Positions 6,750 to 62,453 of a stretch of DNA of 64,000 bases are shown here, one piece after another. The notes under the pieces were generated by a model. It saw only the letters and a program-made list of their open reading frames with translations, was not told the origin of the DNA and made no database searches. A program made the translations under genes and the position numbers. This DNA comes from Ostrea edulis (lineage: Eukaryota), in the NCBI RefSeq assembly GCF_947568905.1, contig NC_079169.1, positions 11,098,001-11,162,000 of the forward strand, written 5' to 3'. How positions within the stretch are numbered: position 1 is the first letter of the stretch; every line of letters starts with the position of its first letter.

Positions 6750-8670
6750 CCGGCATCATGTTCTGTTGGTGTTAATATTACCGGTATCATGTTCTGTGAG
6801 TGTTAACATTACCGGTATCATGTTTTGTGAGTGTTGAGATCCCTGTGTAATGTTCTGTGAGTGTTAATATTACCGGTATCATGTTCTGTGAGTGTTAATA
6901 TTACCGGTATCATGGTCTGTGAGTGTTAATATTACCGGTATCATGTTATGTGAGTATTAATATTACCGGTATCATGTTCTGTGAGTATTAATATTACCGG
7001 TATCATGATCTGTGAGTGTTAACATTACCGGTATCATGTTCTGTGAGTGTTAATATTACCGATATCATGTTCTGTGAGTATTAATATTACCGGTATCATG
7101 ATCTGTGAGTGTTAACATTACCGATATCATGTTCTGTGAGTGTTAATATTACCGGTATCATGTTCTGTGAGTGTTAACATTACCGGTATCATGTTCTGTG
7201 AGTGTTAACATTACCGGTATCATGTTTTGTGAGTGTTGAGATCCCTGTGTAATGTTCTGTGAGTGTTAATATTACCGGTATCATGTTCTGTGAGTGTTAA
7301 TATTACCGGTATCATGGTCTGTGAGTGTTAATATTACCGGTATCATGTTCTGTGAGTGTTAACATTACCGGTATCATGGTCTGTGAGTGTTAACATTACC
7401 GGTATCATGGTCTGTGAGTGTTAATATTACCGGTATCATGTTCTGTGAGTGTTGAGATCCCTGTGTCATGGTCTGTGAGTGTTAATATTACCGGTATCAT
7501 GTTCTGTGAGTGTTAACATTACCGGTATCATGTTATGTGAGTATTAATATTACCGGTATCATGATCTGTGAGTGTTAATATTACCGGTATCATGTTCTGT
7601 GAGTGTTAATATTACCGGTATCATGTTCTGTGAGTGTTAATATTACCGGTATCATGTTCTGTGAGTGTTAATATTACCGGTATCATGTTCTGTGAGTATT
7701 AACATTACCGGTATCATGTTCTGTGAGTGTTAATATTACCGGTATCATGTTCTGTGAGTGTTAATATTACCGGTATCATGTTCTGTGAGTGTTAATATTA
7801 CCGATATCATGTTCTGTGAGTATTAATATTACCGGTATCATGATCTGTGAGTGTTAACATTACCGATATCATGTTCTGTGAGTGTTAATATTACCGGTAT
7901 CATGTTCTGTGAGTGTTAACATTACCGGTATCATGGTCTGTGAGTGTTAACATTACCGGTATCATGGTCTGTGAGTGTTAATATTACCGGTATCATGTTC
8001 TGTGAGTGTTGAGATCCCTGTGTCATGGTCTGTGAGTGTTAATATTACCGGTATCATGTTCTGTGAGTGTTAACATTACCGGTATCATGTTATGTGAGTA
8101 TTAATATTACCGGTATCATGTTCTGTGAGTGTTAATATTACCGGTATCATGTTTTGTGAGTGTTAATATTACCGGTATCATGTTCTGTGAGTGTTAATAT
8201 TACCGGTATCATGTTCTGTGAGTGTTAATATTACCGGTATCATGTTATGTGAGTATTAACATTACCGGTATCATGTTCTGTGAGTGTTAATATTACCGGT
8301 ATCATGTTCTGTGAGTGTTAATATTACCGGTATCATGTTCTGTGAGTGTTAATATTACCGGTATCATGTTCTGTGAGTGTTAATATTACCGGTATCATGT
8401 TATGTGAGTATTAACATTACCGGTATCATGTTCTGTGAGTGTTAATATTACCGGTATCATGTTCTGTGAGTGTTAATATTACCGGTATCATGATCTGTGA
8501 GTGTTGACATTATCGGTATCATGTTCTGTGAGTATTAACATTACCGGTATCATGTTCTGTGAGTGTTAACATTACCGGTATCATGTTCTGTGAGTGTTAA
8601 TATTACCGGTATCATGTTATGTGAGTATTAACATTACCGGTATCATGTTCTGTGAGTGTTAAGATCCCTG
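6750..8670. repeat. Minisatellite, 31-bp unit accggtatcatgttctgtgagtgttaatatt (~60 copies)
   Basis: Period 31 (ccggt at 6781, 6812). A recurrent interrupting variant gagatccctgtg occurs at ~6836, 7238, 7454, 8012 and at the array end. Confidence 0.97.
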
Positions 8671-9844: not shown

Positions 9845-10120
9845 GGCTTTTGGTATGTTGTTTTACGTCCCATTCGAAAATTGTTCTCTCCTATAGAGAC
9901 GCCATCAGCTTTGTGTGAAGTGCCACAAATTTAGACCTATGCTTGGCACTGTTCTTTATCGTACCAACGCCTTGCCGTAACACGGCTATTTAAGAAAGTT
10001 CCGTTATTTTCGTTTCTAATGCTGGGTAAAGGAATACTCACTAATTGAAATATTAAATGAGAATCGAACCCAGGACCCCATGGTTACAATAAGGGAGTCC
10101 TAACCGCTAGGCTACCGCGA
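9845..10120 (-). mobile_element. Degenerate tRNA-derived SINE, same family as 16556-16889
   Basis: The reverse strand has tcgcggtagcctagcgg (A box) and gggttcgattc (B box). Body tgccacaaatttagacctatgc is the reverse complement of gcataggtctaaatt...gtggta in the 16556 copy. Confidence 0.7.
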
Positions 10121-10494
10121 ACACTGTGTTTTTCATGTCTGTCTGTAAGCCATTCTATAGGCAAATGATTTTAACCAAAGGGCTTTTAACTTTGACGGTT
10201 TAGTTACCTTTGACTTTCAGTTTTTTGGATCAAAACTTCTCCTGCATATGTCTAGGGAACTACTCGACCACTATCAACAAAACCTGACAAAAGGCATCAT
10301 ATTTTGGGACACAGCTCCTTAGGGGGAGATAATTCAAAAAACTAGTTGCGTATTTTAAAATACACAAAGTCAATTGCAATCCAGAATCGACCTGCATCTT
10401 TTTCCTTTCGACAAACCGTCTTATTCGATTTTACGTGTACATGATTTATATAAATTGTATGTACAATATATAGCCATTTTAAGCTTCGTTATAT

Positions 10495-56498: not shown

Positions 56499-56874
56499 AA
56501 ATGTTGTCTTGTACACATCAACTATTCGATTTAATAAAAGTCTAATACCGGTATTACCCCTATTGATATCAGATTCTCTAAATAGATTGGTAATATTGCG
56601 TAGGCCTAAGACTGAATTATAAGTTGTGATATCATGTTTGGTAAAATGTGTGATCGCGCCGTATTTTTAAGGCAGAGTTTCACGATGCCCATTATGTTGA
56701 TTTCTATTTAATTCTGAACATGACAAACAAGACGTCATACTGTATTCTTTTATTAAAAATACAAATATACCAGAGAAACATGTGCAGTCACGTGCTTTCT
56801 GATACAGCAGCTGTATACCTATATTCTGTCCTGTCTTCCGCAGATCATGTCTCCGGTTTTCTCCGAACACGGTG

Positions 56875-57186
56875 GTGCTTGGTTCTGTTGGGGTTTTCGG
56901 TGCTTGGTTCTGTTGGGGTTTTCGGTGCTTGGTTCTGTTGAGGTTTTCGGTGCTTGGTTCTGTTGAGGTTTTCGGTGCTTGGTTCTGTTGAGGTTTTCGG
57001 TGCTTGGTTCTGTTGGGGTTCTTGGTTCTGTCGAGGTTTTCGGTGCTTGGTTCTGTTGGGGTTTTCGGTGCTTGGTTCTGTTGGGGTTTTCGGTGCTTGG
57101 ACACGGTTCTGTTGGGGTTTTCGGTGCTTGGTTCTGTTGAGGTTTTCGGTGCTTGGACACGGTTCTGTTGGGGTTTTCGGTGCTTG
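56875..57186. repeat. 25-bp tandem repeat ggttctgttggggttttcggtgctt downstream of the AAC4-like stop
   Basis: Period 25 (56881, 56906). It explains the TEPSTE and KHRKPQQ ORFs. Confidence 0.93.
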
Positions 57187-57378
57187 ATTCTGAGCTGAAT
57201 GAAGTCCTTTCTAGGATACCAGCTTCATTTTGCACTGTGGGTGTAAAACTTCTGAGAGACAATCATGCGTTTCTAATTCTGGATCGCTTTTCGAAGTGCG
57301 TGAGTACACCCCTGAGCACCTATAATGAGATATATCGGTATATCCTGGGCTTGGGTTGAGCCCTGAGAAGCCTTTCTG

Positions 57379-57569
57379 TCAGGGGTTGTAGAAGATGAAG
57401 TCTGACCGGCGGGTCCGGGAGATGACCACCACTGTGTTGGACACGAGGTCGGTAGGAAGGTCGTGGAACGCTTTGGTGATTAGATTAGCCGTTTCCTTGT
57501 TTTGAACCCAGACGTGCAATATCTGTTTGCTCCATTTCTCTAATGTATTTCTGTTTGCCTGGTTTACCC
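57379..57569 (-). CDS. AAC4-like gene, terminal exon
   Basis: cacacag| GVNQANRNTLEKWSKQILHVWVQ...LPTDLVSNTVVVISRTRRSDFIFYNP*. Phase matches the upstream exon. Confidence 0.82.
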
Positions 57570-57842
57570 CTGTGTGATATATAGGAAATCATTTTAATGT
57601 GTATATTAAGTCTTTAACACAAGAATTGGTAACCCAAATTACTACCATAAGCTACATTCTCTTACGGGGCAAAGCAATTTTTTCACGATTTGTGTTTTGA
57701 TAAGAACACATTTATCGTTCTCAGAGATGAACACGCAAATCAAAGTTATATATTTCCCTAAGAATTATTAATGATATGATACAATCAAAAAGTTTTTATT
57801 GTTTTGTTGTTTTATATGGACTTGGTAGGAATATAGGCCTAC

Positions 57843-58005
57843 CTTTGAGTTTCTTCATCAAAAGATTCATAGCGTCCTCCTGTGTAAAGTCACCACGGTA
57901 CTTCATCGCACGTGTGACAGACACACCCACTTTTGTGTCGAAAATTTCACACACATAATCTGTTATTGATCCTCCCTCCGGAAAGTAAGACACCTCCATT
58001 TCAGT
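57843..58005 (-). CDS. AAC4-like gene, middle exon
   Basis: ttccag| TEMEVSYFPEGGSITDYVCEIFDTKVGVSVTRAMKYRGDFTQEDAMNLLMKKLK G|gtaggc. I recognise the motifs as the Dictyostelium AAC-rich mRNA clone AAC4-like family. Confidence 0.85.
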
Positions 58006-58193
58006 CTGGAAAAGAAATGTCTCGTAATGAAAACAGGGTTTCATGAAATTTTAAACATGCCATGCCAGACTTTTTAAAATATTCTTTAAAATCAGAGTAC
58101 AGCGTGCCATTTTTATCCGTAAAATCTAGTACATTTAATATAATTTATTCAAATGTTACATGGTACAATAAATTCATGAAAGTATATCCTCAC

Positions 58194-58671
58194 CTTGAGA
58201 AGCTTGGCGTGGAAACTCTTGTGAAACGTTTCAAAGGACAGGACTTCCGAAATAACAGAATTTCCCCCAGCGTTCGGAACACTCCAGATTTTTTCCGCTG
58301 CCTCTGACAGCTTCATACATTTGAAGTGCACCGCTGGGTCGAAATCTAGGTGAAATAAACCTCCATCCCTGTTGCTCTGTATCGACTTCTGCAGTGCGAA
58401 GTAGTCGTAAATTCGAATGCAGAAATGATTCCCAATGTACAGATTACAGGGGGGAGATTTCACTTGTGACTGGGGTGTAACTTTCTCGTAACCCCCATGC
58501 TTCGATAATAAGTTCAAAGTCACCCTCCTCTTGTTTGACACAGGAGTATTTAGAGACCCGTTGGTGTGGCGGACCTGAGAAAAAACGGTGGGGCGGAAGA
58601 GGCCCGTGAAGGGAGGCCTGCGCCTGCCTGTGATGTCGAGCAGAATGGTGATGATTTTGTTCGTGAGCCAT
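58194..58671 (-). CDS. AAC4-like gene, first coding exon, with a +1 frame discontinuity
   Basis: Conserved-looking SVPNAGGNSVISEVLSFE..LLK ends at AAG|gtgagg (58194). The ATG at 58671 (or 58692) is in a different frame; the exon is 478 nt = 3n+1. Confidence 0.7.
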
Positions 58672-59149
58672 TGTGAAGAATTTGTGTATCATATCAGTCC
58701 GACTGCAAAATGTTAAATTCCTGCTGACGATTAATATTAACTCTCTTGCGTTTCAGTGCATGATGAAATATCGCGAAACGCAGTGTTTATATACTGTAGT
58801 CATGCGGTCATGTTTATTTTTATCTCACTAAATATAGCAGCCTATTAGAATAGCCTATATAATTAATTAGAATAGCCTATATAATTAATAATATTGAACC
58901 ACATCCATATGCATACATCCAAGAGACGGGTGTGGGCGAAATAAACCGAGGGAAAATACCCGTTTTTATTGTATGAGAGAGAGAGAGAGCTAGCTGATAA
59001 AACTTGTAAAGTGAGAACTATTTTTAACCATTTGACGGATGTCATGAGGACAAAAGTGGAATTCTGTCCTTACAATACTAACTAACTATATTTATTTTCC
59101 AATCAAGGGCCCTCAAGGGGCAGCATGAAAATACATACAAATAATGTAC

Positions 59150-59430
59150 ATATACATATACAAGTAAAGAAAGAAGTGATTACATAACACATAGTTATAT
59201 ACAAATACAGTGTACATATATATTGTTCAAAATAAATTTTCCAGTTATATTTAGAATGGATGGCTCTTCAGAGCATAGTATGTAAATGAATTTTTGTTCA
59301 TCATTGAGTTTGGTAAAATTTTTAACTGTTTTTTTCTATAGAACCACAAAAAGATTTTCTTTCATCAGCAAACTTTTCAAATTTAATCAAAAAATATTAG
59401 GAATGTGGGCATGCTCTCATTTTTTTCTTC
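59150..59430 (-). mobile_element. Possible decayed LINE 3'-end fragment
   Basis: The minus strand gives NFTKLNDEQKFIYILCSEEPSILNITGKFI, resembling the C-terminus of CR1/L2-type ORF2. Short and frameshifted. Confidence 0.35.
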
Positions 59431-59579
59431 TTCAAAAATCGAAAGAGCTTAAGGTGTCCCTATAGCTACCATATACCTAACATAGTACTTTTTGCCTTTT
59501 ACAAAAAACAACAAACAAACAAAAAACAAAAACAACAACGTATGAGTGTATTCTCTCCTAAAGATATTGTGAGGACGTC

Positions 59580-59618
<39 letters not shown>

Positions 59619-62453
59619 AAAACGTGTATATTTTTAACCATTTGACAGAAGTTGTGAGGACAGAAAGTACATTAGGAGGACAAAAGTCGTTCCCATAAAC
59701 GTGAAATGTGGATACCCTGTATAAATCTTATGTACATACCCCCTCCCTTCTACAATGAGATTTTTATACAGAACCAATAATTTATCCAAAATATGTTACT
59801 TCCCCACCGATCACCCTTATAAGTCATTCTGAATAGTCAGTTTCTACCTTCTGTAAGCTTCTGAGATGACCACATGCGAGATACTAATATCTGTAATTGT
59901 TCAATTTCCAAAGGTTATGAGATTTCTAAGTTATGTATGGATTGATCCATAACCATCGATTAGGAATTTCAGGTACTCTGCAGTACATAGCCTTGACTTT
60001 TAACTTTTAAAATTCAATATTTTGGAGTTGCGTATTGATATATTTGTATTTAGAAATGATTTGATCTTTTAAAGGTCTGTATACTTTGTCTTTGCCAGTT
60101 TCTCCTTATTAAGTTACTCTGTACATGTAATATTAATCCTGTAAAGCTTCGAAACTGAATGACTTAGAATTTGATTGTAGTGCTAATTGGTATTGGGAAC
60201 TGAAAAAATGGGTGGGGGTGATCAGAGAGAGTATGGGTCCAAACGTCAGGTGCCTGTGGGGTCAGACCCAGAGTTATAATGTAGCTCGAGTATTGATCCA
60301 TTTCTAATAAGTATTGATCCGTCTCTACTAACAGTGGAGGCTTTTAAGAAAGACCGAGTCTCATCTGATCTCTTTATTTCCTTGTCCATACAGTTTTACA
60401 TAACTTGTTTTTTTTATGAAGACTAATATGTACAGACTAGTCATTTGGAGTACACATCGGCATCGACAGTGAGCAATTTCTCAAATTTACTTAAATTCGG
60501 TTTTCAACTTTTTTTGTTGTTGTACATTTTGCTTTAAGAGAGTGTATCTAGCAAAGCTTTTAAATGTCCTGATGAATCTTTGGCATAAATATAAAGTATA
60601 TCCAAGCTTCTGGAAAAAACACTGCAGTTGCAGAGAAATGCCACCTTTATGATAATTCACAAAAAGTCACATGTCCTAATTGCTGGTTCCACTTTTTCCA
60701 TCATGTTGGATTCTGCACAACACACCTCAACGATTCAACAGATGCTTCGGACTGCGTGTAGAAAAGTGTACAGAGGAGTAAACCACTGCACTTGATTTCA
60801 GTTTAGGAATATACAATGATCCCTGATATCTCAAGTGTGTCCTCTTATACACTTAATGCAATATTACAAATTCTCACAAAGAAGATCTGATAGCTGTGTA
60901 CAGTCTTTTTTTATGCTTTAATCACTGTGTGTTCCGGATTACAGAGAGATGGTCATACATTTACTTCTTCAAAAGTCTGACTTACAACAAAAAGCAACAA
61001 GGTATTAAAATATCCATACAGTTACACAAATCCATACAGTTACACAAAGGCCATAGTGACAAGTGGGAGGACTATGTTTACACAGTCGCATATCACCGAC
61101 ACATGGACAAACAAGTTGGCTGCGTCAAAGTATGCAAATAAAATTTACACAACACTAGTTTGGGTGTCAACCAACTGACACAAATCAACAAATACAGTTT
61201 TAAAACTTCACATCAAAATGTTCAAAGTGGTAATAATTTTTAATACAAAGTTTTCAGCTAAAGCCAAGAAAATAAACTAAAACTTAATGTCAAAGACACA
61301 CAACAAATTTAGATTAATACAATTTTCCATGTTTGTTTAGAAGACTAGTCAGATGCTTAACTAAAACTGCGAAATGTGACCCGTACAAAAAAAAAAAATA
61401 CTGGTAAAGTACCAGATAAAACTGATATTCTAAGTATAGGTATTTACTATTTACATTTTCCATTAGTCAAGAAACAGAGTGTTAACTACCATACTATTTG
61501 TGCTCTCCACATATTTTTCCATGAAGTTAAAAATGGTGTATTTCATTATCAGTTTCTCTGCATGCCATAAGCTTTTCTTTTTTTTTTGAAATCTAAGATC
61601 CTAACTCAAGTATCACTCATCTATATCACAGTCCCAATGGTTGCGCAATATCTGTCACGCCCACCTTATATACAGAACAACATACAATGATATACACAGA
61701 TATGTGTACAGTAAAATATCATTTAATTGATTTCCCAAGTAAAAACATCTATTAATGAATAATAATGAATGAATGGACTAATGGAATCAATAAATTGTTA
61801 CTGCATTCCAGACATGAAACATTGCTGAAGTAGATCAACCTGTGTCTCTGTGGCAATGAACACTTTTAAAATTTCTGTTTGCAATACCATCTGCTTTACT
61901 GATAGCACAATATAAATCCTATTTTTTTTCTGACATACATGTAACAAAAACATTTTGCCTACCGTAGCTACTAAACAATATCTTGCAAGCTTAATAGCGT
62001 AAATTTGGGTATACTTCCTGATCTACATGTATGATAACAAATGGCAGTTATCTAACAATTAAACACCAAGTACAAGTGAACTCTTAAAACATATCTCACT
62101 AGTGTCATAAAACACCACAAAGTATGTTAAAAAACCCAGAGATGATTCCTTGATATAAAATGACTTGATACATGTTTACTGCCAACAACAAATTTTTTAA
62201 TGTAGTTGGCTCTCTACTGTTATATCATAAGTAATGCATGGACAAGAATAAGCCACAACTTAATTGCAAACAACGAAAATGTAGTTATTTTTCAACAGTT
62301 ACTTCTGTCGTAATGCACGGACGAATACATGCTATAACTTAATTGCCTGTAAACATTTAGTCTTTGTGTCATGCTTACAGCAATATATATATACACACAT
62401 GTAATACATCGATAACAATAGAAGAATTCAATAACAAAACAATATCATTGATT

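Follow-up and report, generated by a model that had tools for sequence, protein, structure and literature searches.

The 64,000-nucleotide (nt) stretch of Ostrea edulis DNA analyzed here (contig NC_079169.1, positions 11,098,001 to 11,162,000; hereafter the window, with positions counted from its first letter) carries on its minus strand a gene of three exons named "AAC-rich mRNA clone AAC4 protein-like". Splicing from the ATG at 58316 reproduces exactly P0007, the NCBI AAC4-like protein of O. edulis, which has 158 amino acids (aa). Exon 1 holds two overlapping reading frames, an ATG-initiated frame A and a frame B that is shifted by +1 and encodes the conserved domain of the family, and the question addressed below is how ribosomes could pass from the first to the second.

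Gene structure and the two reading frames of exon 1

The gene and its reading frames comprise the following features.

58785 to 58793, minus strand: TATA-like box TATATAAAC, ~30 nt upstream of the 5′ end of the RNA-like contig
57127 to 58756, minus strand: transcribed region, with exon 1 to 58194, exon 2, and exon 3 with the 3′ untranslated region (UTR), from the RNA-like contig of run X27
58194, minus strand: end of exon 1, followed by a GT donor, from the sequence and a contig joint
57843 to 58005, minus strand: exon 2 (TEMEV...KKLK, phase 1 end), from the joints 58005/58194 and 57568-57569/57842-57843 in runs X27 and X19
57379 to 57569, minus strand: coding part of exon 3, to the TGA at 57381-57379, matching the C-terminus of P0007 identically, with joints in contigs
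58444 to 58692, minus strand: frame-A open reading frame (ORF), 82 codons from the ATG at 58692 or 75 from the ATG at 58671, with the stop TAA at 58446-58444
58669 to 58671, minus strand: likeliest start codon, acaATGg (A at −3, G at +4), judged by its context and by an ATG kept in all three oysters
58194 to 58688, minus strand: open stretch of frame B in exon 1, +1 relative to A, with no ATG before 58316
58314 to 58316, minus strand: first frame-B ATG, the start of RefSeq P0007

A sequence-only reading of this DNA had held that the ATGs at 58692 and 58671 open frame A up to the stop at 58446-58444, that the family domain lies in the +1 frame B, and that frame B is open from ~58690 to the donor at 58194 without an ATG until the domain, all of which the sequence confirmed, with frame B open over 58688-58194. 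The same reading took 58692 and 58671 for the only upstream ATGs; both are indeed present in frame A, but five AUGs precede 58316, none of them in frame B (58692, 58671 and 58320 in frame A; 58498 and 58366 in frame C). Frames A and B are both stop-free over 58688-58447 (242 nt). The conserved domain begins at ~58474 in frame B, with CNLYIGNHF at 58448-58422, and the first frame-B AUG at 58316 lies inside the domain, so that frame B, lacking an ATG from 58688 to 58316, is a downstream ORF without a usable start of its own. Both homopolymer runs were located as had been read, a T6 run (58585-58580) within CGT TTT TTC TCA and a C6 run (58454-58449) within TCC CCC CTG TAA, and the string ...ttttttctcag, followed by G, ends at 58575.

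Two homopolymers in the overlap and a good-looking acceptor ending at 58575 could suggest that the split is an artefact or belongs to a dead gene, whether through a miscalled homopolymer, a null allele, or splicing of an upstream exon into 58574, each of which the sequence-only reading had offered. Twenty public runs from nine studies hold all or part of the stretch, 18 of them at least half of the sampled words, and the run contigs, which are unable to reveal minor RNA forms, were compared over 57000-62000. The RNA-like contig of X27 (1169 nt, depth 124) covers 57127-57568, 57842-58005 and 58194-58756, shows 0 differences and 0 gaps relative to the window in exon 1, and has joints only at the two downstream introns, while a contig of the independent DNA run X14 spans 57158-59106 with 0 gaps and the same homopolymers. 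As far as contigs can tell, this agreement refutes an assembly error, and retention of the split, with a constant +1 relation, in 19 loci of several phyla refutes a null allele. Run X19, from a related species, shows identical splicing, a 6-nt deletion at 58616 and eight substitutions in the gene, with both frames kept, and the downstream splice sites and exons (58005-57843 and 57569-57379), correctly read as intact, were confirmed by spliced contigs. The mRNA begins near 58756 and exon 1 is unspliced throughout. The TATATAAAC box and the following GATATTTCATCA...CTGAAA stretch are also kept in Saccostrea (alignment A1), placing a TATA box and a conserved start region directly upstream; given this box, the contiguous contig to ~58756, and an AG that is not conserved elsewhere, splicing into 58574 is refuted as far as the contigs show. 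An artefact or a dead gene is thereby rendered exceedingly improbable.

The RefSeq model offers a different account, in which the 158-aa protein from the AUG at 58316 is the only product and the upstream region is a leader with upstream ORFs (uORFs). Many database models of the family are likewise shortened to 158-200 aa, and NCBI models in many species start at the Met of 58316 (158-163 aa), which is invariant (column M27, alignment A5) in all 15 aligned members, including continuous cnidarian ones, and may be structurally important or a second start. However, the 42 frame-B codons before 58316 (CNLYIGNHF...HFKC, 58448-58317) are highly conserved at the protein level from cnidarians to oysters, variation downstream of 58443 concentrates on third positions of frame B (28/48 vs 12/48 and 10/48), and QSQVKSPPCN carries four B-synonymous changes between Ostrea and the oyster-like contig L003. 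In the predicted structure of the Saccostrea orthologue P0006, modeled with a predicted local distance difference test (pLDDT) score of 87, these 42 codons supply the first strand and helices of the fold. With five upstream AUGs to be bypassed as well, the RefSeq account is very unlikely to be right, and the 158-aa model is probably truncated. Given that the domain codons upstream of 58316 are conserved and that five non-B AUGs come first, ribosomes starting at a frame-A AUG must reach frame B.

Comparing the P0006 model with known structures returned CdiA-CT (Z 9.1), HamA (8.8) and the XisH-like 2okf (8.5), against a tool background stated to lie just below Z 8-9, and nearly all of the top structural matches were PD-(D/E)xK-fold nucleases, suggesting that the domain adopts a PD-(D/E)xK nuclease-like fold. 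Invariant residues include E50, E69, E71, D83 and SVTR 96-99; the usual D...(D/E)xK signature was not evident in the family alignment, where the (D/E)xK position, as placed from the alignment, reads SVTR. Pfam scans of the exon products gave no match, and the family has no Pfam model. A search with P0006 retrieved 402 relatives at E <= 0.001, and the AAC4-like family occurs across invertebrate animals; no paralogues of the gene were found within the window, and literature searches turned up no report on the family beyond its name and none on frameshifting in it.

Spread of the frame split and coding character of frame A

Following up the orthologues by tblastn and direct translation, as the sequence-only reading had proposed, we found the frame-A ORF and the core consistently out of frame. 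The 19 loci, which come from molluscs, a brachiopod, an annelid, a hemichordate and unknown taxa, each have an ATG-initiated frame-A ORF that overlaps the frame-B domain, with B always equal to A+1. The split loci are distributed as follows.

Oysters: O. edulis, Saccostrea cucullata and the oyster-like contig L003
Other molluscs: Pinctada, Mytilus (two loci), Pecten, Solemya, Sinanodonta, Dreissena and Haliotis
Other phyla: Lingula, Owenia and Ptychodera
Metagenomic contigs: six, L015-L018, L067 and L073

All indels among the oysters are multiples of 3. Cnidarian-type homologues (Nematostella; contigs L019-L023) have one continuous ORF starting MG..., with a −1 frame full of stops. The long "continuous" database proteins of Pecten, Owenia and Dreissena start at chance frame-B ATGs, with a frame-A ORF also present upstream. 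The distribution of the split among the compared sequences indicates that it is ancient and widespread and not a peculiarity of Ostrea.

Several family members showed further features of their N-termini and exons. All of the cnidarian-type members (L019-L023, P0066-P0112) start MG, possibly a signal for myristoylation, and share a conserved IEDPLLEDAQ immediately preceding the domain. P0041, a 321-aa model from Amphiura filiformis, has an A-type N-terminus (RRQKKRNTRSNF..HHPQRPP) fused to the domain in one ORF; this N-terminus resembles frame A of L016 and Ptychodera, and the model either represents a natural in-frame version or conceals the shift. The S. cucullata locus (L001) contains the last coding exon of the orthologue twice (6977-7171 and 9974-10168), ~3 kb apart and with identical protein sequence; NCBI gives two gene ranges for the same 184-aa product.

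Frame A itself bears the marks of a coding sequence, which the sequence-only reading had left unseen. Its peptide is conserved, rich in R and H, and carries RFFS and acidic QEE motifs besides a W, and homologous ATG-initiated ORFs occupy the same relative frame at 18 other loci, giving the consensus M..HR..HR..RFFS..SP..P.QEE.D..W with the recurrent motifs HRK.HRR(S), RRFFS, P.QEE(W)D and a W. Across 11 distant species, the mean best local score was 40.5 for frame A, compared with 30.0 for B, 25.3 for C and 25.7 ± 5.2 for shuffled sequences, and an A stands at −3 of the frame-A ATG in 9 of 12 other species. A frame-A profile search of 5.8 billion proteins gave a single match, a Dreissena-like ORF. 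Substitutions among the oysters were scored as A-synonymous : B-synonymous by region, with one value per species pair.

ATG to the U-run: 10:5, 13:5 and 11:4
58552-58497: 6:1, 4:1 and 4:2
58496-58447: 3:4, 3:7 and 3:4
Downstream of the A stop: 4:11 (one pair computed)

The oyster changes thus show an A-synonymous excess from the ATG to ~58497 that is reversed further downstream. Comparative sequence evidence of this kind indicates that frame A encodes a 75-82-residue peptide conserved across bilaterian phyla.

Candidate shift sites and competing explanations

Taking these observations together, we consider a ribosomal frameshift, at whatever site, the probable link between the two frames. The variant that we favor, with some reserve, is programmed frameshifting at an early position with a dual-coding overlap: a fraction of the ribosomes translating frame A would shift into B, by +1 or, equivalently, −2, the likeliest site in O. 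edulis being CGU_UUU_UUC_UCA (58587-58576). Translation would then yield both an unshifted frame-A protein (75-82 aa) and a transframe protein of ~276-277 aa (by extrapolation ~283-284 aa if started from the AUG at 58692) made up of a frame-A N-terminus, a frame-B linker and the domain, and the stretch from the site to the frame-A stop would be dual-coding. The predicted 276-277 aa fit the length of the longest annotated models of the family (264-294 aa), although several of their N-termini are probably frame-B mis-annotations. Three places in the overlap were examined as sites.

58576 to 58587, minus strand: candidate site 1, CGU_UUU_UUC_UCA in A, read as GUU_UUU_UCU in B
58552 to 58560, minus strand: candidate site 2, CGG_GUC_UCU in A, an exact match to the RG_GUC_UCU −2 motif
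58444 to 58455, minus strand: UCC_CCC_CUG_UAA, the C-run with the frame-A stop

At site 1, the P-site tRNA could slip by +1 from UUU to UUU, or a tandem −2 slip could take UUC to UUU and UCA to UCU, so that −2 slippage, absent from the sequence-only reading, fits the U-run as well as +1. CGU/GGU_UUU_UUC is identical at synonymous sites in the oysters, Pinctada, Mytilus, Pecten (GGU) and Solemya, Lingula has CGG_UUU_UUU, and run X19, from the related species, has the site without change. Variation in exon 1 is lowest in the 80 nt 3′ of the U-run (21/80 columns variable). From the A start to the RFF kernel, 5 frame-B stops were observed against 6.7 expected, whereas from the kernel to the A stop there were 0 against 10.0 expected (7.5 when scaled by the upstream ratio; Poisson P(0) 5.6e-4, scaled), and a Mytilus species pair has changes directly after the kernel and U-run that are synonymous in B and nonsynonymous in A. 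Site 2 is invariant in the three oysters and reads G_GUC_UCC in Mytilus L006 and Sinanodonta.

Several results weigh against an early shift at the U-run. As a proposed site, the run is kept in Pteriomorphia, Solemya and Lingula but shortened or missing elsewhere, being U4 in Sinanodonta and Dreissena, U3 in Haliotis, and absent in Owenia, L015-L018 and L067. A phase-aware search for slippery k-mers in the 19 loci found no motif common to all, the best being U_UUC_UC in 10-11 of 19. Structure 3′ of the U-run was not detected either by folding against shuffles (z = −0.98) or by RNAalifold, which gave no consensus pair among nine species, though not all known frameshift sites require a 3′ stimulatory structure. 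The A-site codon for a +1 slip, UUC, is not slow. With the frame-A peptide taken as given, how open frame B is across the entire ORF is only marginally unusual (Fisher p = 0.07), and frame A remains under purifying selection, and open, well past the U-run (openness p ~0.01 vs the empirical −1-frame stop rate). Finally, the acidic motif of frame A resembles the PLLED that directly precedes the domain in continuous cnidarian proteins, which would favor a later shift.

In such a late shift, frame A would be read nearly to its end and the frame changed between ~58497 and 58447, for example at UCC_CCC_CUG_UAA, where CCC_C permits re-pairing in +1, ahead of a stop. Frame A would then supply the whole of the first 60-80 residues of the mature protein, an arrangement matching that of the continuous cnidarian proteins, whose RRFYT and PLLED just before YIGENF resemble the frame-A RRFFS and P.QEE.D. 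The oyster substitutions, A-synonymous to ~58497 and B-synonymous from ~58474, agree with this, as do A-synonymous changes at 58489 and 58471 between Ostrea and its congener. By contrast, a late shift leaves the lack of frame-B stops from the RFF kernel onward unexplained, and the B-synonymous, A-nonsynonymous changes that directly follow the kernel in the Mytilus pair also speak against it. The C-run with its UAA, the second site proposed from the sequence, fails as a general one: Saccostrea lacks the run, L003 has lost the stop so that its frame A continues into the domain, and the frame-A stop lies, depending on the species, 2-31 codons before the domain or 3-16 codons inside it, with last sense codons that also differ among species. 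We consider a late shift possible but unlikely, and an early shift with a dual-coding overlap accounts for most of the data.

Several other proposals were rejected. A stop-dependent shift as a general mechanism conflicts with a stop that wanders from 31 codons before to 16 after the domain's Y, and a short hop of CUG over UAAU to the next CUG fits Ostrea only, as judged by eye. The frame-B motifs VFS, SPL and NKKR were dismissed as proof of B coding from the U-run, their source proteins (Pecten, Owenia, Dreissena) being split as well, and KHRK of Dreissena was dismissed as an in-frame fusion, being frame B of the same split.

It is also conceivable, though we regard it as quite unlikely, that no frameshift occurs, with A acting as a separate small ORF (a regulatory conserved-peptide uORF or a micro-protein) and B starting by a non-AUG codon, leaky scanning or reinitiation. 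Selection acts on frame A along its whole length, and the frame ends in a stop of its own. No slippery motif proved universal, and the residue before the domain's Y is encoded by AUG in Mytilus and by CUG in Ostrea and Saccostrea; animals are known to have N-terminal extensions that begin at non-AUG codons (PMC3105428). However, the frame-A AUG lies in a strong context, most species having A at −3, and one to three A-frame AUGs precede any B codon, while no near-cognate codon is positionally conserved and only 7 (Mytilus) and 5 (Solemya) B codons are open upstream of the kernel. Reinitiation after an ORF of 75-100 codons is inefficient, and it would have to go backwards in L003, Pinctada, L015, L017 and L018, where A ends inside the domain. 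The gene also differs from a conserved-peptide uORF arrangement: the peptide is conserved, yet no AUG lies ahead of the conserved start of the main ORF. The frame change first read from the sequence thus stands as a real +1 split, whereas the shift itself is what we infer, with the two slippery sites first proposed for it being candidates only.

Surroundings of the gene and relation to known frameshifts

Just 3′ of the gene lies a 25-nt tandem array (56874-57192; 12.6 copies, 84% matches), the first part of which falls inside the RNA-like contig and is therefore 3′ UTR. Directly upstream of the promoter, 59004-60005 consists of very high-copy repeats, with a summed X14 depth of up to ~70,000 vs ~50 for the gene and with many loose ends and internal joints in the X14 contigs. 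Further upstream, 60541-62000 is spanned by long RNA-like contigs from both X27 and X19 (depth 99-130) and probably belongs to a neighboring transcribed gene, in which the related species (X19) differs by many substitutions and small indels.

Among known systems, the layout of the AAC4-like gene is closest to that of antizyme (OAZ), which, as described in PMC1874602, has a short AUG-initiated ORF1 and a longer +1 ORF2 without its own start, joined by an obligatory shift with wide animal conservation; in both, a short ORF1 overlaps a main +1 ORF2 that lacks its own start. However, antizyme shifts beside the ORF1 stop (UCC_UGA_U), whereas the AAC4-like frame-A stop is not positionally conserved, and the AAC4-like overlap is long (40-70 codons), its ORF1 is itself a conserved peptide, and no pseudoknot was found.

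The motifs in O. edulis come closest to the −2 class RG_GUU_UUU / RG_GUC_UCU described for arterivirus nsp2TF and proposed for ASXL2 (PMC5644247). CGG_GUC_UCU matches exactly, the U-run permits P- and A-site −2 re-pairing, Dreissena has CAG_GUU_UUC, and the target frame is the same (+1 = −2). C-rich runs (CCGCCACACC and similar) follow the U-run in Pteriomorphia, with no match shown to CCCANCUCC, the C-rich protein-binding element of this class, at its spacing of ~10 nt 3′ of the site. The slip pattern of the class applies in O. edulis only (CGG_GUC_UCU, 58560-58552; U_UUU_UUC_UCA, 58587-58576) and the motif is not in all split AAC4-like loci, and the trans-activator of arteriviruses is viral.

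With PLEKHM2, ASXL1 and influenza PA-X (UCC_UUU_CGN), the AAC4-like gene shares a conserved overlapping +1 ORF, a P-site Phe codon that re-pairs in +1, and raised conservation in the overlap. By contrast, its site, UUU_UUC, lacks the slow A-site CGN and departs from YCC_UUU_CGN; its shift, near the 5′ end, gives the main domain rather than an alternative C-terminus; and the AAC4-like split is invertebrate-wide, whereas PLEKHM2 and ASXL1 are conserved within vertebrates and the influenza site is viral.

Very few frameshifts in animal nuclear genes are known to be conserved across a phylogeny, namely antizyme, PLEKHM2 and perhaps ASXL, to which retroelement genes of the PEG10 type can be added. 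We give even chances to the fuller proposal that a nuclease-fold gene has retained, from before the protostome-deuterostome split, an obligatory recoding step with a dual-coding overlap, either a +1 shift or what would be the first cellular −2 shift. If true, it would be the second animal-wide nuclear frameshift after antizyme, nearly every public model of the AAC4-like family would have a wrong or missing N-terminus, and a conserved frame-A protein of 75-100 residues would have been overlooked until now. The gene would then also provide a natural system for a eukaryotic frame change without a stop codon or an obvious RNA structure, open to direct study in oysters and mussels, for which tissue, RNA and proteomics resources exist.

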